Positions 29,509 to 62,576 of a stretch of 64,000 nt of DNA are shown here, piece after piece. The first letter of the stretch is position 1. Every line of letters begins with the position of its first letter. This DNA comes from Hormiphora californensis. Taxonomy: Eukaryota; Animalia; Ctenophora. Below the pieces are notes generated by a model. That model was not told where the DNA came from and ran no database searches. It saw only the letters and a program-made list of their open reading frames with translations. A program made the position numbers and the translations under genes. Location: assembly GCA_020137815.1 (NCBI GenBank), contig CM035362.1, positions 620,001 through 684,000 of the forward strand, written 5' to 3'.

Positions 29509-30576
29509 ATGCCCACTAGGAATGTTCAATATCGGAGCAAGATAATTGCCAATCAAACGGTGGGTCCAGAATCCGATGACCGAGCGCTCCAGAGGGGAGC
29601 AGCTGGGTGTACTCAGACGCCTGCTCCCCTCTTGGTTCCCCCTTGATTCTCGAAAAGGGGGAACCAAGAGGGGCAGGAGAGTGATCATGATCAACCTAAA
29701 TGCTCATTTAATTTACTAATCATCTTCACAGGAGTATAAATCTCGTATAGATGTGGAGAGTAATGTAATTGCAAATAACACATGGTCCCATGGCCTCTTT
29801 TTGTGCTGTGATGATTGTGGATTGTGCTGTATTTCTGCTTTCTGTCCGTGCGTGACATTTGGGATCAATTCTAGGCACATTGAGGCGGGTGAGTCTGTTA
29901 ATTGATCAATGATAATGGGTTCAAGGTTCCTGGTCACTGCCCCCACGTCAGTGCACGTGTAGATAGTCAGATCGGGTCGGGCGTCGGCGCTTGTCGTGTC
30001 ATTGCTCTGACAGATCGGCGCCGCTAGACAGGTGTATGTAGCCAAATTCCCAATGAAACCCATTAATCATTATTCCAGGTAACTGCTGCGTCCAAGCGAT
30101 ATGCTGTCTCATTCCAATTGTGAACTGCTTCTATCTGCAGAAAATCCGAACACAAATCCGTCAAATGTACGGAATATCGGTAAGTCTACCCCTGAATACC
30201 TACTCCTTTTTGGCTAGCACTCACTGGAGCAGGCTATTACTACCAGTATCAATTGTCAGGCCAATGCTCTGACAAGTGACAGAGTATCAATATCATGATA
30301 CTTTGTTGAATGATACAGGATACTCCCAGCCCCCAGGCCTTTCTACTTTCTAGTGTGTACCGATAATCTGTCGATTGTCGATTCTAGTTCTGGAAATCTA
30401 CCAAGAAAGGTCGGGTCCAAATGTCCAATACCAACTTTAACAGGCTCTATCTCTCCCTTCAGGGTTCAGCGTTCAATGATTTCATTATGGTTTGTTGCTT
30501 TGCTCCGTGTACCATAGTGCAGGAAGCCAAGGAGCTGAAGATAAAGCCTGGTGAGGTCATAGCACGGACCTGGTGA
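29509..30576 (+). CDS. PLAC8/cornifelin-family cysteine-rich protein (4 exons)
   Basis: MPTRNVQYRSKIIANQT | EYKSRIDVESNVIANNTWSHGLFLCCDDCGLCCISAFCPCVTFGINSRHIEAG | NCCVQAICCLIPIVNCFYLQKIRTQIRQMYGIS | GSAFNDFIMVCCFAPCTIVQEAKELKIKPGEVIARTW*. GT-AG introns with consistent phases; first exon least certain. Not in the ORF track. Confidence 0.85.
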
Positions 30577-31867
30577 GGTCATAGCACGGACTTGGTGAAA
30601 ATAGTTTGAGCTACAGCAGGATCTGTGCTAAACAATGAGCCGTATGTGGCGTATATGGTGTGGTATATTATTGGAATTTGTTTAATTCATTTTGTTCACA
30701 CTTGACGTGCTAGAATGTTTTATCTTTAGATTTAAGAAAAGCCAGTCTTGATGAGGTATGCCTATTTCCTAGGCAATATATAAAACTTGCACACATTGGA
30801 GGGGGAGCTATGTACTATGAAGTCGTAGCAGCCGACCCAGGCCCCAACTGCAAAGGCCCAATATTGCCTACCAACCTGTCCTGTATGGCAATACCAACCT
30901 AGCTGAGAGTGCCTCCAGAAAGTCCTATATCATGTCATGATTTGACATGTTCCCAGTCTGTCGGCTCTCACACCGGGCCTTCGGCCCGGTGTGAGCTTAC
31001 GCGAGCCCGAAGGACAGACTGCGTAGCATGGCAACTGCTATTGGCAAGTCATGATGGCCCCCGATATGTATATAAGATGAAAAACAAGTTATTTATATAC
31101 GGGTAGAAACGTGAATAAAGAAACAACTCAGTATACACATATAAATCACTTTAACACTGTTATTTTAGCAGAACTCGGTAAGCAAGAAGAACGTGTCCTG
31201 GCCTTATACCCAGATAGAATTAGATATTTTCAGTAAAGCTATTCCAGGTCATACGAGCTGGAATACTCCGGTAATCAGACCCAGATAACTCGTATATAAC
31301 CCGGCTAGATCAGAAATAATTAAGCCTAGATATCCCGAATTATCCTCTGGACTAAGTAACCTAAAAATATTACAGGGGTGCTCCGTCATATTGACCACCC
31401 GCATAGCAATGCCTAAGAGGTGCTCATGATCAGTTCAGGAGACAATATAAATTGCCACACACAAATTTAAACTGCTCACGAGAGCAACGGACACCTTATT
31501 CCTGCTTACCCGCGTAGCTCATTAACTAGACATGAAAAGGAATATAAATCTAAACTACTTTTAGTGATATATACCCAAAAACCGCAATTCAATACACAAT
31601 CGAATACTTTAGTTTTACAAAAGAGTATAATATATTAGTACAAGCCGAACACGTATTTACTTTTATTAAAGGTAGGCAAAGGAAAGTTTTTTTCTCTCTT
31701 GCATGGTCTGTATATCATACAGAATATAATACTCTTGCTTTATCCTGCCTATAATGTCTATAATAGTCAAGTCCTTCCTATATATTGGTCATTGGGGGTG
31801 GGATGTTAGATACGTAATTCCTTCAACTCCTAGCAGCAGGTACTCCTAGCAGCAGGTTGGTTGTGTT

Positions 31868-34800
31868 TCATTGGTCCTTCTTCTTATCTTCCTCTGCACT
31901 CGAGGACGGGATCTGAAATGGATGATAAAATGAAACAGCAGAAGGTAAAAGTGTAGACGGGATATTACAGGAGTTGTTGTTCCTTTACTACTGAGGGGAT
32001 TCGCCGGGTCGGGATGGCCTATCTGGTATGGGGTAGGGTAGTTTGGCTGTCTGGGGTGGCTATCTAGGGTAGGGAATAGGGTGGCTGGAATAGGGTGGCT
32101 GGGGTGGGTTAGCTTGGTGGATAGGGTTGGTTGATTGAAGAGTGGGGTGTCTTGTTTCTCTCTCTCTTACCTCCTCGTCCTCAGATCTATTATCTTCCAC
32201 ACTTTCACCATTCTCTCCCAGGATCTTCAACAGCAGTTTAACAATAAAGGTAAACCAGTAGATGTGAAGCACCTGAAACATTTGTGGTATCTTTTGTGGG
32301 GTGATCTGATCCTAGATGTAAACTGGAGTGATATGTGTCCTGATGGGGGATATTTTTGGCCTAATCAGGTGAAACACTCTTTTCGCATTAAATTGTAAGA
32401 TATCGGGGTCTGACTTGCCAAGTTAGACTGCCATTTGCCGCAACAAAGCAAGGTCTGTCTGTATTTGTTAATTGTTATATTACCTGTAGAATAATTAGGA
32501 ACAGTCCGTATACAATGTTAGCTGGCCACACTCCTAGTACTGCTGTTGATTCAAATAGAGATGATGTTAGCACCCTGAAAGGATGATGGGGGTTAAGAGA
32601 TGCAATGACACAGTATCATAGCACGATTGTCTGGCGGCGCCAACCCAATCTGAGCACAATGTCATAATGGGGTCTGGCAGCAACATGATTACTCACTATC
32701 CTTTTTATTTTGATAAATAAGTTCTCAATTGAACACCACAACCTACTTGTAAGGATAGAAAATGAGTCGGAAAATGATCCAAGAAAGTGTAAACCCAGCA
32801 AAACATACGTTGGATAGCATTTCGTACTTCAGATAGATACCCAGCTTAGCTGTCTGAAAAACAATAGGGTTTGTAGAAGGGGCAATACAGAAGATGAAAA
32901 TTGTGGTGATTGACACGCTGAAGTTGAATGTTTCTAAAGTATAATATTACACTGCCGCCGGTAGTAGGAGCTGTCAGGACTCGGGACAGGGTGGGAACTA
33001 GAATGAACTTACCTCTAGAAATACGGCACAACTTACTACTTGCTTACCTCTAAAAACACGTCAGCCACATCATGTATAACCATGATAATGGAGCCCATTC
33101 TGTACCCTCCACCAACCCAGGAACCTCCAATTAGGGCCAAGGTAGCTATGTGATGCAGGAACATTTCCCAGAAATCCTTCCTTTTGGTGTCGTGGAATTG
33201 TGATACAAGGAGTGAGAGGTAGAATGCCCCCGATACCATGTAGTAGTAGTACAAACTGAGCGGGGGGGGGGGTATAAATCAAGTTGTATCTCGGATTTGA
33301 AAATCTTGGATTTGAAAATCAAGACGGGGTCTGGTGCCGCCTTATACATATTACATATGTCATCGGTGGTTTATTCTTTATCTCTCTCAGTCTCCCTAAC
33401 TATTAATAATAATATTTCTATCTCTCTCACCAGTTTGGTATAGCCCACGTCAAATCAGGATACCCGACCCAACACAGCATTGTATTCCAAAGGTAGTCTT
33501 GTTTCCACATTATTGAGATTCCATAGCCACATATGGAACTGTAAAAGACGAACCTCCACCTGTAGGGGTGCATGAGAACATTACAAATAGCCTCCTCTTT
33601 GTGCCAGTTCAAAAGGGGTGGATGAAGATGGTTTGCAGTTGGGAGCTGCGGTGTTTCTTGCGTGTTTCGCAGCTCCCAACTGCAATGTACCCTCTCAGAC
33701 TTCAGCTTTTCCTATAGTTAATACTCACATAGTTTCTTTGAATTTAGTTAGTTTACTGGGTGTTATTTCCCTTAATTTCCTCCTAATCCACACTTCCACT
33801 TCCCTTACCTCCATATCTGGAAGAGGATATATTTCAAATACTTGAACTCCATATTGCAGGAAAATCTATTGTTCAGCTATCTGGCGGCGCCAAACCACAG
33901 AACAGTTGTTCAGTTACAAATAAAACTATACCTGCTAGTTTAGCTACTTCTTCGATTTGTTTTTGGTTTGGTTTCTTTGTCCTAGCTATCAATGCTTCCA
34001 GTTTCTTATTGGGGCCTGGGTTATAATTGGATTAATAAACATGATTCAACATATCGATTAGATATATTGGGATATATTTACACACTGATCTTTTTTTTGG
34101 AAAAATTAGATATAAAGATGACAGTAGGATTGGTTGTACACAGCTACATATTTTACATAGTGGAACGAGTGGTACCTACATAGTGGCTTTCTTTTTTCTG
34201 ATAAATAGTTGTTGAGTAAGGGTCAGCACACACCAACGTTAAAATTAAAATTAAAATTTGACGTTTTCGGCACTGCTGACCCTAACAGCAATATAATAGG
34301 CATAAAGCGTGAGGGGGGATGAGTTGACTAGACCCAATCAATAAAATTAATCAATGATATAGGTGTCATTCGAGCTTCCAATCGCCAATCGGGGGGGGGG
34401 GGGGGGGGGCTGTCAATAATAAAATAACAGTGCAGTGTACCATTTCTATTTATTGGCAAAGAAGTACAGTGCCAGTACTCAGTAGGTACATTCATAATGA
34501 TTTACATCTGTGATAGATCTATTTATAGCATCTAACATATAATTTGAATCAGCCTCACATCCTTCCCCTCCTGAAGAGAGGAGACGGTATGCCGCGGTAT
34601 GGTATGCGGGCCCTTATCTACTGTAATATAATTCGACACGTGAACATACCTGGTGGGTGTGTGTTAGAGTAATGTTTCAGTCCACACCACTTCCCTATAG
34701 GTTCAGCTATCACCCTGAAAGTGTCGGGTGTCAGTGTCAGGTGTCACACGGGAAATTAATTAGGGGACACAATGAGGTGATTTACCCACTGATATTGTTG

Positions 34801-36154
34801 TTTTAAAACGGCCAGCGCGCGCAGTTTGTAGCTTGGGGGTCATCGCGCGTTACTGCATGTACACCGCCAGGGAAGTTTTCGCATCCGAACAAGCTTGTTT
34901 GGAGAGCGTTCGGTGGATAGCTTTTTGTTGTTCTAGCAGCTAGCTTCTACCGGTGTGTCATGTGTGTGTGCATTGTTTGTACAAGAGAATATAACAGGAA
35001 ATAGAGGGCAGCGAGATAGAGAGAGGGAGAGAGATATGTTGGACAGAAAGAAGATGGCTGTATAAATTGACCAGGCTAATTTTCCAAACCAAGACCAGAT
35101 AAATTCCAATGGCTCCTTTCTGAATGTCAACAATAGCTCTGGCTCTAACTCCCTCACACCCATTCCAAATTCAACATAGCATAGTTACGGTTATGGTTTA
35201 CTGCACTGTCTGTGCAGGTATTTTGTGCAAGCAAAGTCAATTAACTTATTTACCCCATCTTTCTCTCTATCTCTCTATCTCTCTATCTCTCTCCCAGGCT
35301 ATTTTCGTGTACAAATTCTAAAAAGGAATTTTGTTGCCATTCACACATTCCCACGGTTAAAACACTATCTACTAATGTGTGAGGTCAAATTCCCTTATAT
35401 TACAAAATACGCACACGTTCATTGTGCAGAGGTGAACAGAGATAAGGCGAGCTTTGTCGGCCGTAAAATCGACACCACTAAAAAGGTTACGTAACTACGT
35501 CATCTTTCCACAAAACTGGTTTTAACTTGTTTTGTTCTAACACTCCTACACATATGGTGTGGGGTACGGAGAGAGAGTGAGAGGGGTTCGAACAATGCAA
35601 ATCTATAACTAGCTAGTGGGTTCTGAAAGGCAGCTTCATAGAACGGGCCAATGACCTAGAAAGCTGTTTTACAGATAGAAGAAGGAAAAGCATCAGCCCC
35701 CACATTTTAGAAAATTGTGCTGACTATTGAGATACACCTCTGCAGCAGTTGCGATACATTATTCAAGAACTGATGTAATACTATTTCCTATACAAAGTAT
35801 TCATACTTACTTTTCAAAGATGAATCTAACTACGTAAAGTGTTAGAGCGAGCATAGCGACAGTCTTGAAATCAGTAATGCTAGGGTAAACATATCCCTCA
35901 GGTGATTCAGTCTGGTCGGATAAAGGCCATTTGTTACCGTGCTTTCTATAATAGTTCTCTCCTGAAACAGAAACGATGTTAGAACAGGGAGAATCAAATA
36001 CAGGTGAAATAAAAATACGTGTGAATTTTGTAACAGTTTGACCCCCACAAATTAAGTCACGATTAACAAGTAACTCACCAAACCACCAGAAAGTGTCATA
36101 TTTGTTTTTGAAGATCCGAGAGAACTGGTCCCATGAGGGAAATGGGTATAACAT
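31868..36154 (-). CDS. CERS: Ceramide synthase (TLC/Lag1 domain) with homeobox-like domain, CerS2-6/schlank type
   Basis: Exons give VRFIFEK|VIAEPIGKWCGL, PNKKLEALIARTKKPNQKQIEEVAKLADMEVREVEVWIRRK..KFKETMWRFVFY, Lag1 motif RKDFWEMFLHHIATLALI..IHDVADVFLE|TAK, LHIYW..EDNRSEDEE; stop at 31868. Confidence 0.93.
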
Positions 36155-37991
36155 GGCGAGCTAAACGGGTGATCGTAATTAAAATATATCCAAAAACAGT
36201 TCACACTGACGGTCTCCTCCCACCACCAGCTTGGGATTGTAATGGGTGTACCGCCCGAGATGTAATCTACTACCAGAAAAGTGATTCAGTGACCAAACTG
36301 AAACACTTTTTTGTAGTATGATTGTGCCTCAGGTACGGTGGTACATCTATCGTAATCCTCCAGCCCGGACATCTCTTGGGGACGTCTACCGTCTCCGGCC
36401 TCCGTGCCGGAGATCTCCTGTAGGTGCAAATGAAGCCGTGAAGCGTCTTTTCCCGTTATAACGTGTATGCACTGTGTGTTTTTAGTGTGTTTAAACTGTT
36501 TGGCCTTCTTAGTATCATGCATCTGCTGCATGGGCCATGGTGGCTTTGTTAGTGTGTGAGCGGGTGTTTTTAAGATACGCCATGAGATATGCATGAGACA
36601 GCAGGTGACACAGGAGACAAAACGGAGACCTACTCAAATGACAAATCTACACCTCATCTTAGAGGTCTAACTGAAAGGGGACCCTCCAGATCATATCAGA
36701 TCGCTCTGAACTCATCCTGCATCCAAGATAGAACTTCAGTTCTAGGTTTCATAACCATTCGGGAACCAACCACCGTCCAAGCGAGATTTTGACAGGGGCG
36801 GTGCACGGCTTTCAGTCGCACTGGCTAATATGTTGACGGAAAATTTTTAACTCACGTACTCCGTCGAAATACCCAATGCGGACGGTCCACATTGGCTATT
36901 TTGACGTAGCACGCGGATCGATAAATACTACGACGCCCGACGGCAAAAAAAAACCCTGTGTGGCGTGCAGATTACACCGTTTTCTTGAATTTGTTCTTTT
37001 TCTCTCCGAAGTAAAATGCGGACGCGGACGCATTGTCCGCATGGCAGAGCCGCCCTGCACAGGTCCAGGCGACTCAAATCCCAACGGCCAACACCGATTG
37101 AATGGAAATTGGCATCACTTTTCATTTTTCAACGGCCGAGAAGCTGAAATGGCTTAAAATGTTGAAAACAGTGACCGAGATGTTTGACAAATGCTACTGG
37201 CCCTAAGGCAGCGTTTTCAACAGAGACCGGAGACGTCAGAATACTGAAAAACGAAGGCTGAAATCAATTTTCCGTTTTGGCCAAAGCAAAAAATTGATTT
37301 AAAATTCCAAATTTTATTTAATATTTTTCTAGGATTGAGCCGCGCACGCAGCGTTTTTGACATTTTATCGCGCGTCACGCTTGTGGCAGTGTACTAAAGT
37401 GCGTTTCAAACGACTTGACCTGAGATTCCTGGAAATTCAGGATTTCCCCTTTGTAAATACACGCGCAATGCGCCCAATTCCAAGAATTACGGGTCAAGTC
37501 GCTTGAAACGGACTTTATTATATTTTGGTAAATGCGCGTGGGGTTTAATCCGCAAAATCGAGTGCAGCTTCCCTTCAGAGAGCCTGCTGCACTCGATTTT
37601 GCTAGTTTTGGTATTTTCTTGGCATGCGCTGTATTTTCTTGGCATGCGCTGTCCACGGTCTTTGACGGCCACTAAGGCCTAAGGGGCATGGAGGTCTACA
37701 CCGTAAACCTCCCTCTGGCACCGGTTAGAACACGGCATAGCATTGCGGTCGCGATTTTTAATTTTGCTTCACCTGAAGTCCGTTTGACTAGTAGAATTGT
37801 ACATACCGGTGTACTATTATTTTCTTGCCCGTTACAATCTTTATCTTCTGTTAATTTTTCAATTTTCATCCCAACTGGGCCCGATAAGTAATCAATTATT
37901 TCCATTAAATACAAGTTGAAAGAAGTTGTTTTGTACAAACATAACAGTCTAACTTGGCAAGAAAGAAGCCCAATACGTTTAATTCAATAAT

Positions 37992-38709
37992 TTAATAATT
38001 AGTACATCCGTTATGCAGTAACTCTACTTCGAACTGAAGGGCTGAATTTGGGGGAACAGGTCCGATCTCTGTCTCTCCGTATCCATACTCAGGAGGTATA
38101 GTTAAACGTCTCTTTTCACCGGGACACATCCTGTGGAAAGAATACAGTCAGAGATAAATATTGACTGCCTGATTAGTAATAAAACGAAAGTGGAAGCAAT
38201 TATTTTAGGTTTTAGTAGCACGTTGATTTAGAGATGTTTGCTTTAGTTATTAATTACCCAAGAAGACCGAGATCCCATCCCTTCATGACTCTGCCAACTC
38301 CAAGTATAAACAAATAAGGTTCTTTCCATTTGTAGGATGAATCAATCTCAACGCCCGTCTCCAAAATTCGTCCCTGAATGGATATGTTACCTCTTGAATC
38401 GCTGGACATGGATTTACCCGAATTATCAGAAGATCCAACATCCAGATCAAGTAAGTAAGGCCCCAATTTACCGGGAACCTCAAAGGAAAGGGTTTTGTCG
38501 GGGTTATCCCCGGTAAATAAGGGTATGGTAAATAACGGTTCGACTGTACTCACAACATAGTGTACAACAAGAGTTTCTTCATTAGATGTAGGTAGGGTAC
38601 AGTTCTTCTCCACTAATTTCTCAATCGTAAAACCAGAGCCATCGATATTGGTACCGTCCGAAACTTTAATTAGTACACCCAGAATGATAATTATTGATAT
38701 CCGATACAT
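37992..38709 (-). CDS. FKBP2: Secretory-pathway single-domain FKBP peptidyl-prolyl isomerase (FKBP2-like), 3 exons
   Basis: Signal peptide, VVHYV|[32 protein letters not shown]|[31 protein letters not shown]; introns 38374-38553 and ~38132-38257. Confidence 0.85.
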
Positions 38710-39809
38710 ACTGCAAGTATTAATATGATATTGGGTTATTGGCGTCTAGTTGTTATTATAGTCGATTAGCCAAGACAACTTATCAAGACATTTACAAATT
38801 TGGATGAGATTGCTGCTGTGTCGTTGAAACTTTTCCACAAGTTAGACAAGCAGTATACCATACACAAACGACATCTATACAAAATTGGAACACTGGGAGT
38901 CTTGAGGTTCATTTCCTATTTTCCCTTCCCTGATTTATAAGGGTCAAGGGAAAGGAAAATTTGAAAAATAGGAAATCACCTCAAGACTCTCAGTGTTTCA
39001 TTTTTCAAAATTTGAAAAGAATTTGAATGAAGTTAGAAGCAATCAAATTCTTTTATACATCTTCAGAGTATATGCTTTAGCAGGACTGCTTTCAAAATTG
39101 AGACGTTTTGTGACTTTTTATTGAGAATAGTGTACTCTGTTATTATATGACTTGAAGTTTGGGATTTTGATACATTCTGTCAAACTAGAAAGTATGAAAA
39201 ATAGTAGCTCCTCCATCATACCCGACCCGCTATTAGCAGCATGGTTTACAGTAAACCGTTTACCCGCTGAGCTGTTTGAGCGGCCGTGTTAACGTCCCTC
39301 CGTAATCCTAAAACTAATTTACAGGTCGATAACACGCCACCTCGTTAGTAGTAGTAGGAACAGTACAGGAACCATGTAGCAGGGACCGTTACTTGATGAA
39401 GTCTACTGGAGAGTCAGGTAAATAGGATGGTTGTTGTTCCGTATCTGCTTCATACAGGGTGTCCCACTGTTGTTCCGTATAACAGACCTACATTCCTACA
39501 TGTTTGTTGTGATGTTGTTGATAGGATGTCAAGATTAGCCTCGTGTTTTGAAGAGTTGATAGTAATGTCAATATATCAATTATCATGTGGGCTAATGGAC
39601 GATATATGTCAGCATGTTGGTGGCTAATTTGTGTCGCACAAATCACGTGACAGCGATAAACGGTCATATTTATTTGTCATAATTATATTGATTTATATTC
39701 ACTGCCTTTTTCTCTGTCAGAGCATAAGTTCTGCATAAGGAGCACGCGAGAACTGTGGTCAGAGTATTGGCCTGACAGCTTTTTCTTCAATCTGACCGTG
39801 CACAATTAG

Positions 39810-44898: not shown

Positions 44899-45065
44899 TT
44901 AAACCTGTATCCGGCTACCTGTTCAAGCACTGCAAATGGATGGAAACTACTCAGCAATCAACCCTCGCAGCAAAACAGATAAACCTGTCGTTTTTATTGT
45001 CAGTTACTATCCCTGTGATTGTTCTAGATTATTTTATAGGTATGTCGCGAGTTAGTAAGCTATTC

Positions 45066-48242: not shown

Positions 48243-48288
<46 letters not shown>

Positions 48289-49189: not shown

Positions 49190-49227
<38 letters not shown>

Positions 49228-49229
49228 CG

Positions 49230-49365
<136 letters not shown>

Positions 49366-50676
49366 ACTCTCTCTCTATCTCTCACTCTCTCTCTCTAGCT
49401 ATCTCTCCCACCCGTCGTATGGAGTTTGGACGAAGGAGTTAGAAATTATCAACCTGGGCCTGGATAGCATACTGGCTTTTTCTATTTTGAATTTCAACCT
49501 GATATCAGTTTTTTTGTATTATGTCCCCCTCGCCCTGTCAGAGCATTGGTCTGACCCCATTCTCTGAGCGTGTGAGAACAGCGGTCAGAGCATTCGCCTA
49601 ATACCCGACCCATAGCTACTTATATTCTACTTGGGTATGAGAGAGCCCAATATTTCTATTTACTTTTTGTAATTAATTCTCCTAGTGTAATAACAGCTGT
49701 GGAGACGGAGAAATTCCAAAGAACTAACGAGAAATCTTAGCATCTGAGACCGCCAGAAAGATAACCCTTTATCACATTGCCAATTGCCAAAATATGCCTG
49801 ATAATCTCTTATTTCCATACTTTCCAACTGCATGTCCAGTGAAAAATTAATTATTCAAAATCAAAGATCATTCACTAATTTCTTTGGTACCATTGCCACC
49901 TGTTCAATCCGTTAACATGTGCGAGCCCGATCTCAGTCGCACGTATAACAGGTGTCACCAACCAATTTCTTATTGTGCTGTAATTCACGCCTCCCATTAC
50001 CGATATCACTAATTAAATGTTGAATTGTTGAAATGTGTGTGGTTATCAATTACTGTGTGTTCCCATAGTTGGCACAGTGGCACACACTTGTTGTAACTAC
50101 ATTGCCACATTTAATGATTAATTTTCTAATCAACAGTGTCCTGAGCTTCCATAGTTCAACTGTTTGTTTCCTTGCCTGTGATTGCTGCGTCTGGAGGATG
50201 CCCGAAAGTAGTAGAGGCCGCACCGAACACGCTTATAAGGCGCCACAGCCATTCCGCCGTTAATCAGTTATTTCGGACGCTCCATAAAGACTATGGTTTT
50301 GTAATTTTAGTATGGGCTGAAGTTTCTTAAATTTAAAAGTGACGTGATGTTATCAGCTCAAGTTTCCTATTACCAGTTAAACGGTACAACTGATAACACT
50401 GCACCACCAGATGTATTCATATGACGTATGTTTAGTTTGTAACTGTATTCCTATGACGTATGTTTAGTAGCCCCTTACTCAACAACATTTCACATGTTTA
50501 GTTTGCAACTGATTGTGCTGATCTTGTGACGTTGTGTCCCCCCCCCCCTTTTTGTACTGCATGTGAGGGAGAAACCGTGCCGAAATCGCCCTCTGGGTGT
50601 TATCTATTTTGACCCCCTCGGTCCTCCACCATTTTGATACATCTCATCACCCCCCTCCCCCATCAGCAGTAACAAG

Positions 50677-52807
50677 ATGGCGTATGGTATCGGTGTAACT
50701 CTCATGGTGATATCATCCTTTGGGGTGCTCCTCAACTCTCTAATTCTCTTCATCATCATCAAATCCTTGAAGAAACGTCATGAGGGTACGTGTGGCTGAT
50801 TGCGGGTTATACTTTGGTACTGTTGGTGCCTTCCTTTCATGTCTGCCTGTGGTTTGTTTCTGCCTCAAAAAGTAGTAACAAATTCCACTCCCACTGACAA
50901 GCCCCTACTCGAATCACCCCCCACCCCCTAGTTGTCAAGACAACACTTTGTTTTCAGCGAGTTCGTTCCACATTCTAATTGTGAATCTAGCAGTGTGGGA
51001 TCTCATGTTGGCCATATTTGGTGTGTCTTTCAGGGGACCTGGTATCCTCTTCCCTGGGTATTACACTCAAAACGACTTTCTAAATGCGATCTGTCAGGTA
51101 AAATACTTCGTCAGGACAATGCTCTGACAGTGTGAGATATTTTCAAGGGGGTTAGTACTTAGTAATCTTAAATCTACCCAACTATCAACTCGACATAACT
51201 TGATTAACCTCGGTCAGGTCAATTTATTTATTTGAAAGAAAAGGAAATTAGGGTCAGGCCAATGCTCTGACAAATTAACCTTTGAATCTAACAGCCCCTA
51301 ACTATTTCAGGGTATGGCAGTGTTTATCCCTGCATTTTCCTACGGATCATCTCTTTCCGTACTTTGTGTAACCATCAACAGAAGTTTCGCCATCACCCGG
51401 CCCTTGTCCTATAGGAACTACATGTCCAATAGGATATCTGCATTCATGGTATGAATATGATGAAACTTTACTGAGTGTCAACTCTAACTTTATCTATAAA
51501 CTTAGGAGCTTTTCACTTTATTTGTCTGACCCATATCTAAACAGTCCCTCTATTCTCTCAGTGTATCGGAGTGGTCTGTGTGTTGGTGGTATTCGCACTG
51601 GTGGTTACTGGGATAACTGAATTCTCAGACCTAATCAACCTCAAGTACAGCAATAGTGGTGGTAAGTGTGTATGTTCACAAGTCGATTCTTATATGTATA
51701 ACAGCGCCTTAGTCCTTGCTAATTGCTCTATGCTGCGGAAAGACAGGGTCGAACATCAACAAGGCAAGTGCAGCACCGAATTAATCTAGAAACCGTCCCT
51801 GCAGGACGATGTGCTATCTCCTACACGGATTTTGGTGATGACTTTGTGCTTGCAACCAACAGTGCCTTTCTAATGGTACCCTTCATGGTAAGAGAGTTCA
51901 TGATAATTAGTTGGACCCCAGCTGTCAGAGCATTGGCCTGACCCATTCTCGTTTCTCTCAAATTTGTTCTGCACGCGGAGCGCACGAGAACTGTGGTCAG
52001 AGCATCGGCCTGACAGGACCCCAGATTACTGTGATGCTCGGGGAAGCGGTTTTGTCCGGTATATATATATCGGGGTGCCCGGTATATTCGGCATTCGCGA
52101 TAAATACCGTTATTTTGCTATGTTGTAAATTTATTCTCCACCATGACCACCTCTCCTTCTCCAGGTGACCCTACTGCTATACATTCACATCTTCTACCAC
52201 ATTGCAACGCGGAAGAAAGCTAGTGATGAAACGGCAGCTAAAACCCCCGCTAAGTCGATCAAGAAGACCCATAAAGACAAGATATTTGTCAACATCACGA
52301 TGCTATTGGTCTGCTACTTTGTATCTTGGTTCCCTTACTATGTAGTCCAGGTAATGTGATATCAAATGTGATATCAAATTTTTCAGTCAGCTCGATTATA
52401 ATACACACCCTTACAAAAAATCCGTGGCCCACCTTGTATAAGAGAAGTGTGTGTATTGTGTGTGACTATTTGGGTATGAAATTGAAATCGATATATCTCC
52501 CTCCCAGGTACTAAAGAAAGCGGGTGTCTCTGTCCCTGTGGATGTCACCCTCACAACATTCATCTTGTTCTACTTGAACCTCATATTCGATCCCCTTGTA
52601 TACACCCTCCATCTGCCCAGCGTCCAATCCTTCTGTACGGGATGGTTTGGTGCTCTAATGGGCAGTCATAGTAGGGTTAGTGATGGGGTGGTGAGTTTTA
52701 ATCATAATACTGGTAGTAGAGCTGCAGCTGCTAGTAGAGCCGAGGAGCAGAGAAGGAAGAGACATAGCGAGGATCAGTTTGAGATGAGAAGTCCAGTCAG
52801 TGGGTGA
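50677..52807 (+). CDS. Orphan rhodopsin-class GPCR, 7 coding exons
   Basis: MAYGIGVTLMVISSFGVLLNSLILFIII | ILIVNLAVWDLM..ICQ | ..VTINRSFAITRPLSY | TM4 | RCAISY | TM5..CYFVSWFPYYVVQ | FYLNLIFDPLVY; all GT-AG with matching phases. Confidence 0.9.
51922..52016 (+). mobile_element. 95-bp micro-element CTGTCAG...CTGACAG with 8-bp TSD GACCCCAG (largest member of the family)
   Basis: Terminal direct repeats GTCAGAGCAT(T/C)GGCCTGAC; inserted in a CAGTCGGACCCC-family MITE. Confidence 0.85.
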
Positions 52808-53158
52808 GTGGTGTGCAGACAATGTACTTGTTGAGACAACAAGACAATACAGAGTGGTTCAGAAAAACAGTTTATTTGTTTGTTGATAAAATTGATAATA
52901 TAATGTGTGGTCAGTATATTTTCAGTAGAACTAGAATATCTGTTTTATTCACTGTCAGTGAATCTTGATGTGTGTGTGTTGTTATATCTTGTTGTTTTAC
53001 TTATAATGCGTTTAATTGTTGTGTACAGAGAGAAAGTGTTGCGAAGAGAAAATGTTTCAGTTTGTATTTGCTAATGCTATTGTAAAATTACTTTTTTCTC
53101 CTCAGAAAATTAAGTTTTTAAAACTTGATCATTTTTTAAACTTGGACAGTACAGACCA

Positions 53159-53534
53159 TCAAGGGGGTTGTGTATATAACACTTTCTCCGACACGGGACT
53201 CAAGCACGGGGGTGCAGGTAGCCTACAGAAGGTGGGGTGTGACAGTGATTTCTTTTTGTGTGCATGAAAATGCAGAATCGGTTAGGGACCGTTCCCTCCT
53301 CCCGATGGCTTGTTGACATAGCCCTAACCAAGCCAGCGGAGGGGGATTAAGAGCTCAAACGGGCATACGATGGTGTGGTATGACTTTTGGTGAAAGTGAA
53401 GTGTCTTGTCCAAGTCCCTATTTAACCGATTCTGCATTTTCATGCACACAAAAAGAAATCACTGTCACTCCCCACCTTCTGTAGGCTACCTGCACCCCCG
53501 TGTCGGAGAAAGTGTAATATACACAACCCCCTTG
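53159..53534. mobile_element. MITE with ~125-bp TIRs (TCAAGGGGGTTGTGTATAT)
   Basis: Long inverted arms; TSD unclear. Confidence 0.8.
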
Positions 53535-54311
53535 AGGACAGTACAGAGTCAAATAGATAGGGTCAGTACCGCCACCAGTTATTTCCTGTGAAGACTGGGT
53601 GGAAGTGTGGGAGGTACATGACACACCTGGCTACTTTTTGTAGTCCTGGGGCACTTGCCAGTGCTAAATCCCAGCGGCTTCCGTTCCCACCGAGGCGCGC
53701 GCCATCCAAACTAAATTCAGTCGCGCAAACACAATCACACCGCTGACCTCGCGCGTTACAAACATTCACAATGTCCATCCGAGAGTGTGTGACCGCCGTG
53801 GGACAACTGATCCTATGATCTCATGAAACTGGTACCTTGGCCGGGGATCTTGTTATACAAATCAAGGGAGAGTTATAGCACCTGCTATTTCTGACTCCTG
53901 TTCTTGTATGTGACGTATTAACGGAAAATGAATGTACAATTATGTTTTTTGCATCTTTGCACGTAGTGGGTATAAACACAATACACGCACACTTACACAT
54001 AACAATACACAGAGAGTAGACAGGTGATGTTGTGTAACTGTTTAGGAAGAAGAAAAGGAGTCGGATATTTGGCAAAATACTTTAAATCAATTGACACATA
54101 GAGTTTATTAAATAGTAATAATACAAACTATATTTCATCCGTACCCTCCAGGGGCTGTATATAACCACTGTCGCCAATAATAAATTAGGGCAGGTAGAAA
54201 AATTGAATATCCTTAAATATAACAATCTTTAATTAACAACGGCTCGCATAACTTCATAAAAATCAATAAATAACTTAGATAAAACATTTGATTTAGTGAG
54301 TGTCACCAATA

Positions 54312-55196
54312 TTAACAAATCACACACCCCTTCTTTTTCTCAGGATCCTCCCAATATAGGAATCCTTCCCCATCCCTACCATCAGTATATCTACACCCCT
54401 TATGTTTAACTAACATCATGTTAGGTTGGGGTGCGGTACTAACTCGGTAATCCAAATAACCCGGTCCAACAGTCCTAGCACAATCATTACACCTTGCACA
54501 TGTCCTACCATGGTTTACCATGTCCTTCTTCTTGACCTTTCTCTGGCACAACATACAATGGATCTCATTTAGTTGGGGACACAAAGTGAACTTACTGAAT
54601 TTAATCATTTCAGAACAAACTGGACATTTCACTCTCCGGTGAATACACCTTTTCTCTCGGTGGTCTTCTAGCCATATAGATTGCATCCTCTTATAGCACC
54701 TGATACATTGCATGAGTCGGTAGGGACAGAGAAATGATTTGTGGGGAAGGTATTGTTCCTCCTCGACAATGGCTTTACAGTCTGGACACTCTCGGTACCC
54801 CTCAGGCACTTCCACTGGCTCTTCAAGCACCTCATCCTCTTCTTCACTCTGTGCCTCGAGCCCTTCACTAAGGGGCTCAAAGTGGTCGGGGATTGAGAGG
54901 ACCCAGGAGGCTGGTTTGGGAGATCTGTGTGAGATATCAGCGTAATTAGGAGGAGCAATAGTACCACCCTCAGTAATACTGTATGAAGGGGGTGGTTCAC
55001 TGGTCATATTGTCAATAATTCGTCTAACTGGGATATTAGGATAGGAGGTCATAAGGTTGTATCTGCACCACGGACACTTGGTGTAGTCTACCAGGCATGC
55101 CTCACAGAATAGAATGTGGCAGCAGTTAGTTGCAACAGCCTTCCTGCATATAGTTGAGCAGACTCCACAGTTGAAATCAGATGGCGAGGGAGTCAT
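54312..55196 (-). CDS. Single-coding-exon RING-HC + TRAF-type zinc-finger protein with PPxY motifs and C-terminal CaaX
   Basis: CGVC..CCH..CEAC..CPWC RING; PPPSY and PPNY; CPDC..H..CPYR..C..C..H..C zinc fingers; ends KKKGCVIC*. ATG 55196 follows acceptor TTTACAG. Confidence 0.85.
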   Translation of the reverse strand: MTPSPSDFNCGVCSTICRKAVATNCCHILFCEACLVDYTKCPWCRYNLMTSYPNIPVRRIIDNMTSEPPPSYSITEGGTIAPPNYADISHRSPKPASWVLSIPDHFEPLSEGLEAQSEEEDEVLEEPVEVPEGYRECPDCKAIVEEEQYLPHKSFLCPYRLMQCIRCYKRMQSIWLEDHREKRCIHRRVKCPVCSEMIKFSKFTLCPQLNEIHCMLCQRKVKKKDMVNHGRTCARCNDCARTVGPGYLDYRVSTAPQPNMMLVKHKGCRYTDGRDGEGFLYWEDPEKKKGCVIC

Positions 55197-55568
55197 GGTT
55201 ATGTCGTCCTGTAAATACACATTGGGAGTCAGTATTATAATTCACTCACTCACTCACTACTAGAATAGTAGTGAAAATGGGAACTAAATGAAAATCAGAC
55301 ACATAACAACAGGATTTAACGGATTTAAATAAAAGTTTTCACTACACAACTAAATTCAATATATTATCAATCACTCATAGTCACATATCTGTGCTAAATC
55401 ATAATATCTGGGGGTCACAATTTGCAACAAACATACTGTTCCAAAATAATTTTGTAGTCATTATATATTGAGGATATATCCTCATTATCCGACCGTATAA
55501 ACGAGAAACTCAGTCGCTTGCAGTGATTCTAGGAATAAGTTCATTTAACCCCTATCAATATCCTGATA

Positions 55569-58500
55569 TCAGGAAATGTTTTCGAATGTACTGCAGGCTG
55601 CGTTCACCACTGTGTTGAACCTGAAAATATGTTAAATTTAGTTAATTAAAATTAGACTTCAGAGTGATGCCAATAAACAAGAACGATCGACCCCCGAAAG
55701 AGGTTGCTTTGCTAAATAGGTTTTTGTGTACATGTACCTCTCCCAAAGCAACCCCAGTGCTGACACGTACCTATCAGGATCGTCTGCGTACACATGGTGT
55801 CCCGCTCTCAGAATTAGTTCCACCGTCACGTGCTCTCCCTCCCTTGCTTCCTGGACATTGTTTAATGTTAATACCGGGCGTTTTGGTACTGCCCCCCCCC
55901 CCCCATTTCAAACGAATGTTTCTCAGTTCTCACTACCTCTCCTATCTCTACCTCCCAGCCCCCCTCTCTCCTTCTCTGTCTCTTTCTCTCTCTCTCTCTT
56001 TCTTACCTGTACTGCGTACCCAATAGTGGGGTCCATCCAACTTTGAGCTCCATAAACCATTGAGATGGGCAGACCACTCTGAATCTGAGAAAGAGACGGT
56101 GTTGTAAAGGGTTTTGACATACCCAACCAATAACAAGGGAATCACTGGATCAAGCATGGCAATCATAGAAACGGTCATGGAATGTAGGGATGAATTGATC
56201 TACCCTCACATATATAATGCGGTGTGAGCTACACAAGGGAAATGTGGCTCACACCGTCAATATAACACTCGTCATTTTAATTCAAATGCAAGTGTGCTCT
56301 GTGAGAGTTCGGTAGATCAAGGGAAGTAGTGCAATATGGTGTGTCGAATGATTTAGTATGTGTTATCCATTACCTGTCCTATCCTGTCTAACATGGGGCG
56401 TTTAGCAAATCCTAGTCCAGCATGAAGCATCTTGAAAGCTACCTCCCCACTTGGATTCTAAAGAAGGGTGAGTCCATGTTAACATAAAACTAAAATACTG
56501 ATCAGTTTCAAAACTTTTAACTTTGCCCAAAACTAGGTAAGTTTAGAGCTGAACAAAGTTTTATTAGGGCTCGGTGATGGACAGACGTGGTTTATACCTG
56601 TACATTACAATGGTAGATATAGTTGGAAATGGCATCGGGATCTGTTGCCATACGTCCCGAGAACTTCTTTTGCAGATCTGGTCTTATCTAGAGAAAGAAG
56701 GAAATACAGGTAAAACACTAATTCTAGTAAATACAGACAAAATGCTAATTCAGAATTGTACATGTTGAATTTTGAAGGGGACGTTCAATAATTTGCTTAT
56801 CTTGGCCCTTGATAAATATAGCAACTAAATGGTAGTACAGCATTAGTAATTATCAACTCATGTTACCTTGTTAATGAGGGCAGGACCAAGGGGTCCAGCA
56901 GCTCGGAGGCCAGAAAATATATTGAAGGGTTTCATAACATTAATCACTAGTTTCCATCGTAGTGGCAACGGCTCTGGTATATAGGGGGTGTAAATATTAG
57001 CATCTTTAGGTAGGGAGGTACAGTGTGAAAGTTCAGAAGGAACCCAACCAAATTCCAATACGTTTAATTGCTCTACTGAAAGCGTGCTTTATAAACCATG
57101 TAATTCTTGTCAGGACCTGGAATTTTTGGGGGGCAAGCTAATTTTTCACCAAATGTTACCCAAGGGTCCCCTGAGTCACCACAAAAAAGTCTAAGAGTGA
57201 AGTCCTTGCGGAGAGGTCATTTCCGGGCCACGCCCCTTTTTACCTGTATTATCAGTCATAATTCCAAAATTATGCAAATCCTCTTAGGAAAAGAGTAGAG
57301 AAAAAACCAAGGGCACTAAAGTGATCAGCGTCCTCACATTAGTGGGGGTAGGTGCAAAAACTAAGTTTCTATCTGGTCGCGTTAATGAGTTAATTGGATA
57401 ATTAGGTGCGCGAATAACCGTTTTTGGCCATATGGCTATAGCCACTTTGAAATGGTTTAGAGACGTATCACTGGTGCCATTTTGTAGGCAATGGCTAACT
57501 TATGGGGGGTCGTGGTCGGACTTTTAAGCTCTACCTCCAACCGTTTAGCCGTTATTTGGATTCAAAGGTGCTGATAACGGCTAAACGGTTGGAGATAGAG
57601 CTTAAAAGTCCGACCACGACCCCCCATAAGTTAGCCATTGCCTACAAATTGGCACCAGTGAAAAGTCTCTAAACTATTCCAAAGTGGCTATAGCCATATG
57701 GCAAAAAACGGTTATTCGCGCACCTAATTATCCAATTAATTCATTAACGCGACCAGATAGAAACTTAATTTTTGCACCTACCCCCACTAATGAGAGGACG
57801 CTGATCACTTTAGTGCCCTTGGTTTTTTTCTTTACTCTTTTCCTAAGAGGATTTACATAATTTTGGAATTATGACTGATAATACAGGTAAAAAGGGGAGT
57901 GGCCCGGAAATGACCTCTCCGCAAGGACTTCACTCTTAGACTTTTTTGTGGTGACTCAGGGGACCCTTGGGTAACATTTGGTGAAAAATTAGCTTGCCCC
58001 CCAAAAATTCCAGGTCCTGACAAGAATTACAAGGATTATTATGAAATAAATTGCAGAGTGAGCTACACAAATATTTACCAGTTCTGTCTGGCATTGGTGG
58101 AAGGCCCCATGGGTCAGCTAGTACCAGGTGGCCCACTCTCTCAGGGTACTTCAGAGTGTACAAACAGGCAATGTAACCACCAAAACTGTGACCTAAAGTC
58201 GGAGAAAATAATTAGTAAAATAATTAGTAAAGATTGAGATATATATTATGCAGTTGTATCTTTATCATGGGATAAATAAATTAACTGGATATAATAATAC
58301 CTAGAAGGGTAAACTTTTCCAAACTGTTCTCCTTTCTCCATTCCTCAATGTTAGCTACAAACATATCCTCAACTCCTGCAAAATTACAAATCGATCACTT
58401 TCCATCAAACAGTGTAATAAACTTTTCAGTTTAACTCAAATATATCAAAACATCAAAAAAATGGTATTCTATGACGTCATTTGACTAAGATTGGCGACTG

Positions 58501-61500
58501 GCGTCAAAACTAACCCTCTGGGTCAGCTGGGAAGGTGGGTCTAGATGACCGACCAAATCCTAAAACATCGATTGCATAGACTTGTCTGTACTTTGCAAGA
58601 GAGTCAATGTTCAAAACCCACATTGCTGCTCCCGCACCCATACCTGCAAATATAAATGATAAAGTGGGTTGGGGGAACTGATACCTGACAATGATAACAG
58701 AAAATCCAGACTCCCTTGACGCCCTTGATAGACGAAATGGTTCCCTAGTAAAAACATCAAACTAACCATGAAGCATGACCAGGGGCAGTTTGCCCTGTAC
58801 TTGCGGACTTCTAAACGTCCTAACTTTTCCCTGGGTGGTCTGGGTGTTGTAGATTGTAAGAGGAGTTTTAACAAACGACAGGACTCGCTTTTCGGAGCGG
58901 GCTAGTTCAGTTGAGCTGGTGGGTCGCCATCTGGGCCACATTCCTGGTGGAGGAGAGGGTTGAGAGATAAGTGGTCAGTGGTATATGGGCATCACGGGGG
59001 GGGTACCAACCTATTTTTTTGTATTTTTTTGTATTTTTTTGTACGGTCCGTACAAAAAAATAACCAAAATTCCCTGCTTTTTCCGTACAAAAAATACAAA
59101 AAAATACAAAAAAATACAAAAAAAAAAAATACTGCTGAAGGGAACTTCTTTAGGGCCCCCTATAAGTCTCTAGAGGTTTGCGGGGTCCTTATACTGGCCT
59201 GTATAGCCCTCTAGTTTCGTAGTACTCATAATCCCATGCTTTTTCCATGCGAACATTACCATGATTAAGTTATTCTAGACCTGAACTTGCTCCAAATCCT
59301 AGTCGGAATAGTGCCCAAGCTTTATTTTCTGATGAAATTTCATTTTTCGGCCGAATATGCCTACTTATTCCCCCTCATGCCTGGAAAAAGGAGGCATAAG
59401 AAGGCCGAAAAACTGAACAAGGCGAATCGGCCTCTCTCCCCCGGGCAGTTGTGCGCGCGCTATAATATATACTCTCAAATCGCAGTCAAGTCAGTTCCCC
59501 CATGGTGTAGTGGTTATTACATCTGCTTGACACGCAGAAGGTCCCGGGTTCGAAACTCGCCTGGGTACTTTTTTTTCAAAACTTTTAAATACTATATTTA
59601 GTATTTTAAATACTATATTTAGTATTTAGTCTGGTTCAGTCATTCTGCCAAATAGTGCTCCTTTCCTGTATCTTTCAACACAGTACCTCTAATATCTGAT
59701 CTCTAACGCACTCAATACCTGCTCGTTTTCTTGTACTGATCCACTACAAGATACCTACAAGATACCTATCACACTAGCGGATCTAATGTATTCGATAGCT
59801 GTTTTAGCGTGATTTAGTATAGGGAAACGACCATCTGGCCAGATATGTTCTAGGGCCCTTCCCTCTCAATAAATAGCACACAATGAACAACAAATAACAA
59901 GTTAGCGATAGCCTAGTAATATGTGGTGCATAGCTGCTCTGCAGGGTTCTCCTAGCAGCTCAAATCGAACACAACAAATTCCCCAGGATCATAGAGTCAG
60001 ACAATTCTTGAAGGAGTATTAACAAAAGTTCTATGGATCAAATCGAACTGTAAAACAGGATACCATTCTAAGCTTGGAGGAGTTCCGTGAGGTCCATGAT
60101 GGAGGCAACTCTGTGTGATCGACACACACACATACACAACTGGAGAGGTTCCAGACAGTGGACACGCTCGACTTGAGGATGAGTTTAAATTTACCACTTA
60201 GAGCAATATAGTTGTATCAGCACCATATGGCTCAACTGAGAGGGAGAAACAGGGAGATAGAGTGAGTGAGCGAGAGAGAGAGAGAGAGTGAGAGAGATAG
60301 AGAGATAGATAGAGTGAGAGAGAGAGGGGGGAGAGACAGATAGAGATGGAGAGAAGGATATTATATAGATAGAGAAAGCGAGTCAGTGTGAGGTGAAATT
60401 ATGCGTGGTTTAGACGACAGACGGGCTTAAATTTTAGGCTGCATAATAAATAATCTGATAAAAATCGTGCAGGTTTAGAAAAGTGAACTATGCAGAGCTG
60501 TTCCTAGTTGTGAGACAAACGACTGCGGAACTACATCTACAATGGGTTAGAGAGTAAGTCATTATTTGCCTTGTTCGACGAAGGTTTGAACAAAACAAGT
60601 CATTATATATTGGTAAACACGGAAGTGTAAACCTAATACTCAACCCACTACTACAACAGTTCACTACTGCGATACTGCGGAATGTGGGTGGGTGTGACTG
60701 TATCAGAACAACTAGTTAACTCATCAGTTGAGTAGTTATATAAACCATCTTTACTATACTGCTGCTTTACTACTTCTCCATATTGCATTGAGGACGTCGA
60801 GGACGAAGCTCTGCGGGTTACCCGCCCTGCTTCGGCAGATAAATATAAACAATATGTTCAGTCCATAACACATTATAAGGTAAGCAAACTATTGAGAAAT
60901 ATGCAAAAGGAACGCAGATTCGGTCAACAGTGGAGCAACCAACTTACCCTAACCACTAACCAGGCGTCGCTTCCCCCTCCTCTCTCACTCTCTGTCTTTC
61001 CTTCTCTCTCTCTCTCTAAAGTGATGCATACCCAGTCATTTGCTATTGAGGTGTTATGCAGACGCAGTTATACAATATATTTGGTCGGAGTGAGAGGGGA
61101 GAGATCGATTAGAAAAGAAGGAGAGAGAGAAAGACAATGAGAGTAAGAGAGAGACATTAGACAATGGGGGCCTAGGGATAGGGAATTAAGACTAGAGCAG
61201 ACCTTTAGTCTAGTGCAACTGTTACAATTAATAAACAAACTATTATATTGACACAATATAAACTAGTAGAGACAATGGACTGTTTAGCTACATAACTAGT
61301 ACTAATCAAGTATTGGCTTTGGTGAAGATCAGAGAAATCCAACTGAGCTCTGCTCCTCTATTGCTATGAAATGACACCGATCTTTTTTAACACTTGGTTT
61401 AGCACTAAGTGTAAATCAATTAGATTCAAAAACTCGACCGTATTTAGACTATTAAATTAAAGTTCCACTATCTTGAACTATTATCAAACTAACTTAGACC

Positions 61501-62008
61501 ACGGGAAAAAATCGGCCAAAATGGGGATAAATTTTGGCCATTCTCGGCCAAAAAATATGCTGGGACACCGGGGTCGTGGGGACGGGGAATGGTAAAATAA
61601 ACTAAATAAACACTCTAGAGGCCTTTAAAGGCCAATAGAAGGACCTCGAGCGCCTCTAGAGACCTGTAGAAGGCACCAAAGAAGTTCCCGACAGCAGTAA
61701 ACTTTTTTGTATTTTTTTGTATTTTTTTGTATTTTTTGTACGGACCGTACAAAAAAATATTGCCTGCTTTTTCCGTACATCCGTACACAAAAATGGTTGA
61801 TACCCCCCCGCATCACGTGACACTCCATATATGGGCATCACGTGACCAGAACATGGCTGAAAGTATGGGCATCACGTGGTCGTTAAACTAAACCTGATCC
61901 TGTAGGAGTATCCCCTAACTCAGTGTGTCCACTTGTCTCACTCCTCTGATCTCCATGACAACCAGACTCACTTCCATTGCTGGCTGTTTCATACCCGCTC
62001 CCACTCAT
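55569..62008 (-). CDS. ABHD4: Alpha/beta hydrolase ABHD4/ABHD5 family, catalytic-Ser (ABHD4) type
   Basis: [19 protein letters not shown]|[28 protein letters not shown]|[22 protein letters not shown]|[25 protein letters not shown]; stop 55569. Probable first exon 62008-61894 (MSGSG..TGS, phase 1) joins the acceptor at 58944; alternative start ATG 58941. Confidence 0.92.
57101..58029. mobile_element. ~930-bp near-perfect foldback element in an ABHD4 intron
   Basis: TAATTCTTGTCAGGACCTGG...CCAGGTCCTGACAAGAATTA; ~455-bp arms around a ~17-nt spacer. Confidence 0.92.
59494..59569 (+). tRNA. tRNA-Val-like gene with anticodon GAC; acceptor and T stems imperfect (possible pseudogene)
   Basis: TGGTGTAGTGG A box, TCTGC-TTGACAC-GCAGA anticodon arm, GGTTCGAAAC B box, T-run terminator. 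Confidence 0.7.
59735..61381 (-). repeat. ~1.65-kb interspersed repeat, copy B, nested in the tRNA-carrying element
   Basis: Inverted copy of 39810-41490 with small indels. Confidence 0.85.
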
Positions 62009-62359
62009 CTGTCCGGTGTAGAGCTCTTACTTTACATGGTCTGACATTTATACCTGCTCCTGGGTGAACAAGATCTCATCATTGATATGGGTGAAGAGTG
62101 ATACAACTAACATTGTGATATTCTGGATCGGGGAGAAATATATTGAGCAAGAGCCAGGAATGAGAGCAATATTATGACTCTCTCTCTCTCTAACACTCGA
62201 AAGGTGAGGTTATTAGCTCAATATAAAACAGAAGGTGGTTTATACTTTGTAAGAAACACATCGATGTATTATTATTGATAGAAACTAAAATCCAAATCAT
62301 AAACCATTTTATGATTAGAAATTTGATGGTCTTTCTAAGAAATCTAACTGTATCATTAT

Positions 62360-62382
62360 CTGTCAGAGCAATGGCCTGACAG
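62360..62382 (+). mobile_element. 23-bp solo micro-element CTGTCAGAGCAATGGCCTGACAG
   Basis: Flanks ATCATTAT / ATTATTAT (7/8 TSD match); same sequence as the terminal repeat of 51922-52016. Confidence 0.7.
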
Positions 62383-62576
62383 ATTATTATTGTAACTGTA
62401 TTATAAACATAAACCAAACAGTCACATCATTCTCTGCAACCCTGCCTCATAAAACGATCACCGACAAAAACTAGGTCTAACTAGAACTGAAGTAATTCGG
62501 TATATATTTGCACAATTTGTCTCTCTCGATGTCTACTCCAATCACAGTTTAATTGTTCCTCCCCTACTCTACCCTC

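Follow-up and report, generated by a model that had tools for sequence, protein, structure and literature searches.

Can a stretch of DNA as short as 23 bp behave as a transposon in its own right, or is it what a larger element leaves behind when its middle is lost? The question is raised by a 64,000-nucleotide stretch of the genome of the ctenophore Hormiphora californensis (GenBank assembly GCA_020137815.1, contig CM035362.1, positions 620,001 to 684,000 of the forward strand; hereafter the window, to which coordinates without a prefix refer), in which an initial annotation had described a family of inserted units, 23 to 95 bp long, flanked by 8-bp target-site duplications (TSDs). Two readings had been offered for the shortest of them: a 23-bp unit mobilised alone, or composite elements collapsed by recombination between their terminal repeats. 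Our analysis favours the second, on account of a series of deletions, of poorer TSDs around the 23-bp copies (solos) and of the lack of a solo subfamily, and it does not need the first. We propose, with a probability of roughly 0.65, that the 23-mer serves as terminal module to a miniature inverted-repeat transposable element (MITE), a non-autonomous DNA transposon of the cut-and-paste type present in high copy number, and that the solos are remnants of its collapse and not a separate 23-bp transposon; this figure covers collapse in place as well as collapse during repair of an excision gap.

The anatomy of the family was drawn from 30 loci around perfect 21-mers, among which two forms dominate. 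The two-module form consists of a left module (CTGTCAGAGCATTGGCCTGACCC), an interior and a right module (TGGTCAGAGCATTGGCCTGACAG), and in all such copies seen both modules lie on the same strand, in agreement with the direct repeat that had been reported at both ends. The perfect 23-bp solo (CTGTCAGAGCATTGGCCTGACAG) fuses, as an exact chimera, the outer halves of a left and a right module. The longest regular form, hereafter the master, measures 95-96 bp (51922-52016 of the window, loci L036 and L041) and is a near-palindrome, with a 23-bp module at each end and, outermost, an inverted pair of the heptamer CTGTCAG; its terminal inverted repeat (TIR) is perfect over 7 bp (CTGTCAG / CTGACAG) and extends imperfectly to about 31 bp, and its interior carries subterminal TTCTCG motifs and a GC-rich centre. 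As single-stranded DNA the 95-bp copy folds into a single long hairpin (-18.7 kcal/mol, z -2.8). The module alone folds into a stem of 9 bp, interrupted by one bulged A and closed by the 4-nt loop ATTG, and is therefore a near-palindrome too, in which only 5 of the 23 bases are asymmetric; these five point in the same direction at both ends of every two-module copy seen. The asymmetric core described at first does exist, but the core is itself partly palindromic. Two-module elements fall into two subfamilies (CCCATTCTCG... and CCCTATTCTCA...), and neither the master nor its derivatives of 23-94 bp have any coding capacity. On the reverse strand a CCAAT box is contained in the core of every module copy (GGCCAATGC), so that ~2,000 potential CCAAT sites are scattered across the genome.

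The family is by no means confined to the window. The genome searched was the 110.69-Mb assembly of 45 contigs (G000 in our numbering, with contigs C1, C2 and so on; the window is C13:620001-684000), in which the 21-mer CTGTCAGAGCATTGGCCTGAC gave 1,905 matches at up to one mismatch, with none for the reversed control; a genome-wide search for the 23-mer had been suggested by the initial annotation. This corresponds to about one module per 58 kb, and the module family is among the most abundant small repeats of this ctenophore genome. Perfect solos number ~250, as extrapolated from 85 W-anchored pattern matches. Outside the assembly, the family was found in six marine metagenome contigs (L107-L112), including two-module copies with TSDs and, in L112, one solo with a perfect TSD (CTAGAAAT); one of these marine contigs, only 1.4 kb long, carries three copies. 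Since marine metagenome contigs carry this MITE family, ctenophore DNA is present in those metagenomes. A search of viral contigs gave no match. A full-text literature search for the end sequence of the element found no paper, and the family is apparently undescribed so far; in the Hormiphora genome paper, repeats were treated by automatic repeat finders only (PMC8527503).

The status of the family as a transposon rests on its flanks. Forty two-module copies were sampled in genome order, and their 8-bp flanks were identical at 8/8 positions in 26, at 7/8 in 10, at 6/8 in one and at 5/8 in three. For the solos, 85 perfect 23-mers were collected with a pattern whose anchor lay 12 bases outside the module; inspection by eye removed one segmental duplicate and six parts of larger copies, leaving 78 true solos, and the TSDs and the target bias of solos were likewise counted by eye on this set. 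Flank identity was 8/8 in 37 of the 78, 7/8 in 20, 6/8 in eight and 5/8 or less in 13. By chance, 8/8 identity is expected at ~0.256^8 = 2e-5 per copy, so that identity in both groups lies far above chance.

Insertion is also selective. At 68 sites, C was found two bases before the TSD in 31 (p=7e-6) and G two bases after it in 33 (p=5e-7), which makes the target site palindromic, and counted by eye the solos have the same bias (C at -2 in 30/57, G at +2 in 24/57). Within the TSD, A occupied position 7 in 28/68 (p=0.03) and T position 2 in 24/68 (p=0.28). Dimeric transposases yield a fixed stagger and a palindromic target, and from the 8-bp TSD together with the symmetric preference we infer such a dimer here. 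Moreover, some copies lie within tandem repeats in which the adjoining unit is uninterrupted and serves as a paralogous empty site, as is the case for a two-module copy in L029 and for a solo at L054:4521-4543, in both of which the basis is the intact tandem unit next door. A family of DNA transposons with 8-bp TSDs, as claimed in general terms by the initial annotation, is borne out.

Full-length and 73-bp copies lie within short-unit tandem arrays (GACGTCATTGTGTGCTCTGT..., GTGCGGGATAGAAGCTAAGTCTAACAGAACT...) in L035 (region of G000:C7:4321043) and L029 (region of G000:C1:3401069), and L054:2001-5400 (G000:C3:8467500-8470900) is extremely repeat-rich, with tandem units like GGGTAGCTGAGAGATGGAGTAGATGAGGAGTA hit by solo insertion. 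The word TTGAGTAAC/G recurs beside unrelated insertions (e.g. L030, G000:C4:6391507, C11:2556975 and L054:5270) and might belong to another common repeat or to a spliced-leader-related sequence.

How the copies differ in length is the second line of evidence. Most of 64 two-module elements are the 95/96-bp master minus a single internal deletion, whose junction is ambiguous by 0-3 bp (microhomology), and the lengths form a continuous series from 95 down to 38 bp, in which some deletions enter the modules. The proposed look at the length distribution thus yields this series plus the 23-bp solos. Length-class patterns requiring perfect outer 15 and 13 bases gave 141 W-anchored matches of 65-95 bp (~415 when corrected for the anchor), 120 of 35-64 bp and 45 of 96-126 bp, the last class consisting largely of adjacent copies and of copies with fillers in the centre or internal duplications. 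In the short class some junctions fall within the modules, as in a 38-bp form in which CTGTCAGAGCATTGG is joined to CGGTCAG.... The exact 95/96-bp centre is kept in only ~10 copies as against hundreds of unique deletion derivatives, and the TSDs of the derivatives are as clean as those of full-length copies. Certain derivatives recur, such as a 64-bp form, containing the perfect palindrome TTCTCGCGCGAGAA, at no fewer than 15 places and a 56-bp form at no fewer than seven; such identity reflects either spread after deletion or deletion hot spots, the former apparently being the case for some derivatives. Within this series, the solo corresponds to the deletion that used the 19-21-bp direct modules, the longest homology available. 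Products of slippage were also seen, namely a triplicated GTCAGAGCATTG inside a module, and head-to-tail double copies sharing a middle module (C2:3169970-3170016 and C2:7006758-7006866 of G000).

Comparison of the solos with the two-module copies gives the third line. A TSD of at least 7/8 surrounds 57/78 solos as opposed to 36/40 two-module copies (Fisher p=0.035), recognisable TSDs have on average ~0.55 mismatches per 8 bp in solos and ~0.32 in two-module copies, and copies without a TSD (flanks of 5/8 or less) make up 13/78 of the former and 3/40 of the latter. Solos are older on average than two-module copies. Solos lacking a TSD would be expected if some of them arise by module-to-module recombination between different copies. 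A solo-specific subfamily, looked for by means of the core variant AGCAATGGC that occurs in the window, did not emerge: this variant is present genome-wide in five solos, three left modules and four right modules, and, being spread over solos and both module sides, defines no solo lineage.

Other results weigh against collapse of this kind or are neutral. The difference in perfect TSDs is modest (37/78 solos, 26/40 two-module copies, p=0.08), and the nearly half of perfect solos with flawless TSDs imply that many are young. A two-module copy and a solo were not observed as alternative states at any site. In a larger host repeat, a 79-bp two-module element with TSD AGTAAGGC occupies the same position in at least 10 copies, unchanged in all 10 examined (L056-L059 and L061-L066, e.g. 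G000:C2:4194770-4194872 and C5:4540235-4540337; high mutual similarity), so that collapse is not fast; the only solo match in that test (L060) has unrelated flanks. The 79-bp element was carried along as the host repeat multiplied. Among the 40 two-module copies, length is unrelated to TSD decay, a pattern more in keeping with deletions made upon insertion or earlier than with slow decay in place, and the recurrence of identical short derivatives at many loci means that short derivatives may move, leaving room for mobility of the solo.

Contigs from two individuals were also compared over two young solos. The first lies in highly repetitive DNA. The second, L054:5362-5384 (G000:C3), is present in the assembly individual within a heterozygous 97-bp bubble (L054:5319-5415): two alleles have similar depth, one being the reference with the solo and the other joining 5318 to 5416, its content unseen. 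The second individual displays the joined form only, among the contigs listed.

Mobility of the 23-bp module itself, which we regard as unlikely, would require that it hold complete left and right ends superimposed, so that a transposase dimer on the palindromic arms, perhaps on an extruded cruciform, could excise and reinsert it with an 8-bp TSD. The 95-bp form would in that case be a two-module composite whose inner arms had mutated to CTGACC / GGTCAG, an idea that we hold to be just as improbable. The numbers of solos (~250 by extrapolation), their 37/78 perfect TSDs and their share in the family's target-site bias would suit such mobility, as would the perfect-TSD solo of L112, the stable hairpin formed by the module, and rare two-module copies with unmutated inner arms (interior after CTGACAG; L026). 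Very short derivatives without a whole inner arm do recur, the 56-bp form at its seven or more places being an example, and the cis requirement per end may consequently be as small as 16 bp or less. Nevertheless, no sequence lineage specific to solos was found, solos have poorer TSDs and more TSD-less cases than two-module copies, and just such a solo is to be expected at the end of a deletion series of which all intermediate lengths are documented. In addition, DNA is stiff, and a complex in which both ends are joined to one target at positions 8 bp apart would have difficulty accommodating a rigid duplex of 23 bp; nor is any transposase known for the family. If true, a mobile 23-bp module would be far shorter than any other mobile DNA known in a eukaryote and would set a new lower size limit for transposons, and synapsis would have to take place on one palindromic site, perhaps by way of an extruded cruciform.

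One mechanistic variant of the collapse explanation, which we consider possible though still doubtful, places the event at the donor site: at each excision the double-strand gap would be refilled from the sister chromatid or the homologue, the two nascent strands would anneal early at microhomologies or, with a solo as the outcome, at the direct modules, and a few full-length masters would move on, leaving shortened copies behind. The scarcity of exact 95/96-bp centres (~10 copies) beside hundreds of unique derivatives speaks for it, and so do derivative TSDs as clean as full-length ones, lengths that do not track TSD decay, and junctions with 0-3 bp of microhomology and occasional filler. For a Tc1/mariner element, the shrinkage of a transposon into MITEs by way of microhomology is documented (PMC3814204). 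Identical derivatives at many loci would, however, also need transposition after deletion, and the data do not separate gap repair from replication slippage or from breakage of the palindrome at the hairpin tip. Moreover, judged by P-element repair, gap-repair synthesis stalling within 30-50 nt would be unusually short.

An entirely different origin, as a conserved protein-binding or regulatory site at fixed positions (e.g. a CCAAT-box module), seems to us very remote. Both the CCAAT in the reverse-strand core and the near-palindrome, resembling the sites of dimeric factors, invite it, and the initial annotation had itself named a conserved transcription-factor site as the counter-hypothesis; but each copy is bounded by a different 8-bp direct duplication, and copies interrupt tandem repeats whose neighbouring units are intact and sit inside other repeats. 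The TSDs refute a fixed-motif origin; a secondary regulatory effect of inserted copies is possible. The ctenophore loop-anchor motif, to which a link was considered, is GC-rich and sensitive to DNA methylation (PMC12221973), and the module contains no CpG.

Taking up again the preferred explanation, in which solos are collapsed MITEs, we would picture the following. A dimeric DDE-type transposase, presumably supplied in trans, would insert the element with an 8-bp TSD; single deletions, with 0-3 bp of microhomology at the join, would remove the middle of the copies and give rise to the length continuum, and these deletions might be caused by instability of the palindrome centre, by incomplete repair of the excision gap, or by both. 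A deletion between the two 19-21-bp direct modules would produce the 23-bp solo, a lone perfect module still flanked by the original TSDs. Solos would then mark old insertion sites, as the DNA-transposon analogue of a solo long terminal repeat (LTR).

A partner for the family was sought in the same genome. Long copies with these ends that encode a transposase, for which the initial annotation had recommended to look, were detected neither by a left-arm search nor around the hAT loci described below: the left-arm sequence retrieved only 95-bp MITEs and shorter forms, and the 96-126-bp class contains no parent element, only fillers, duplications and neighbouring copies. One candidate long copy, L014, with a left end and no right end, was rejected; its interior consists of a ~520-bp repeat family plus a unique stretch, the relatives of which have no module. 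The repeat (L014:700-1225, G000:C1:2702727-2703250) occurs at 20 or more places in the genome (at least) with 94-98% identity, has an internal inverted duplication of its last ~130 bp, and abuts a truncated MITE copy.

Candidates of the hAT superfamily were found through the dimerisation domain PF05699, which matched five loci, two of them with open frames of 666-691 aa. Both frames end in the hAT dimerisation domain. The longer, of 691 aa (L049:4599-6671, G000:C11), is bracketed at L049:3449 and 9062 by perfect inverted repeats of 15 bp (CAGATGAGATAGAGA), and this locus possibly represents an intact hAT transposon with no relation to the module family; the other has 666 aa (L050:5314-7311, G000:C3). 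Within 10 kb around the five loci no module was found at up to six mismatches. A hAT transposase gene bounded by module ends was accordingly rejected as a candidate, the five loci having no module and one having the different ends CAGATGAGATAGAGA. The P-element (THAP9-type) transposase domain PF21787 had no match in the genome, and control genomes were equally silent. Ends of the hAT superfamily start with 5'-YARNG, and its target consensus is nTnnnnAn, which is weakly developed at the insertion sites of this family. The module ends read CTGTCAG... on both sides, which is not YARNG, and a shift of the boundary to CAGAG breaks the TSD. Of the superfamilies that had been guessed from an 8-bp TSD, hAT agrees in TSD length but not in end signature, and the hAT loci are without the module.

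Within the window itself, the 23-mer at up to three mismatches has eight matches, with 0.00 expected (none in 100 shuffles), and the eight copies originally described proved correct in both coordinates and flanks, the duplicated 8 bp differing from copy to copy. The full-length copy, 51922-52016 (95 bp, plus strand; 51914..52024 with TSDs), has the perfect TSD GACCCCAG on both sides, the left module CTGTCAGAGCATTGGCCTGACCC and the right module TGGTCAGAGCATCGGCCTGACAG, and differs from the 95-bp master by two mismatches and no deletion. Three further copies are deletion derivatives or remnants with perfect TSDs on both sides, all of them members of the class with junctions inside modules. The 65-bp one, 39714-39778 (plus strand; 39706..39786 with TSDs; CTTTTTCT), has a truncated left unit, with a deletion that begins within the left module, past AGCAT, and reaches to the AAGTTCTGCA portion of the centre, and a right module matching at three mismatches. 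In the 63-bp one, 51211-51273 (minus strand; 51203..51281 with TSDs; ATTAACCT), the left module is intact and the right one is reduced to its last ~12 bases. The 30-bp remnant, 30253-30282 (minus strand; 30245..30290 with TSDs; AGTATCAA), combines 7 bases of one end (CTGTCAC) with one near-complete module (two mismatches).

The remaining four copies of the window are solos or decayed. The solo at 62360-62382 (plus strand; 62352..62390 with flanks) is 23 bp long, has the core variant AGCAATGGC and flanks ATCATTAT / ATTATTAT that agree at 7/8, and folds as a hairpin (-6.9 kcal/mol). A degenerate 23-bp solo at 29991-30013 (minus strand; 29983..30021 with flanks) shows five mismatches to the consensus when compared by eye, and its flanks GTCGGCGC / ATCGGCGC also agree at 7/8. 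At 49535-49604 (plus strand) lies a decayed two-module copy of 70 bp, in which the left module was matched, the right one is mutated (CGGTCAGAGCATTCGCCTAATAC) and the flanks agree at 4/8, and at 51091-51130 (minus strand) a decayed remnant of 40 bp made of one module, 12 unrelated bases and a terminal CTGACAG heptamer, with flanks of 5/8. An Rfam scan of window stretch 29900-62500 matched no family.

What this family offers is an unusually complete natural record of the shrinkage of a palindromic MITE, from 95 to 38 bp and then to 23 bp. Its insertions can leave 39-bp scars, composed of the 23-bp module and two 8-bp TSDs, which ordinary repeat annotation misses. High indel heterozygosity has been reported in the non-coding DNA of H. 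californensis (PMC8527503), and these scars probably contribute to it.

Small, non-coding and abundant, with inverted and homogeneous ends and a TSD fixed at 8 bp, the family belongs to the MITEs. It shares these features, a TSD of fixed length included, with MITEs that have a TA TSD and were shortened by microhomology, together with deletions at a few bases of homology; it differs from them in its unusually small master of 95-96 bp, its 8-bp TSD and the absence of an autonomous parent among the copies found, and also in that its series reaches a 23-bp form with a TSD and that a direct repeat is nested in the inverted one. MITEs of the hAT superfamily are similar in the 8-bp TSD, the short ends, subterminal TTCTCG-like motifs and, weakly, in an enrichment of A at TSD position 7, whereas the ends here are CTGTC and not YARNG, T is not enriched at TSD position 2 and the strongest target signal lies outside the TSD. 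Foldback-type and other palindromic elements are unstable at their centre (palindrome revision), and the present element resembles them in folding as one hairpin and in deletions centred on the hairpin tip; it is far smaller than Foldback or Galileo and has no long, internally repetitive TIRs. Solo TIRs are reportedly named in papers on Galileo, MULEs and Hsmar1. Like these and like solo LTRs, the 23-bp solo is a single terminal repeat standing between the original TSDs after recombination or deletion involving two terminal copies; here, however, the recombining repeat measures only 19-21 bp, and the 23-bp remnant keeps both cleavage-site heptamers, whereas an ordinary solo loses one end.

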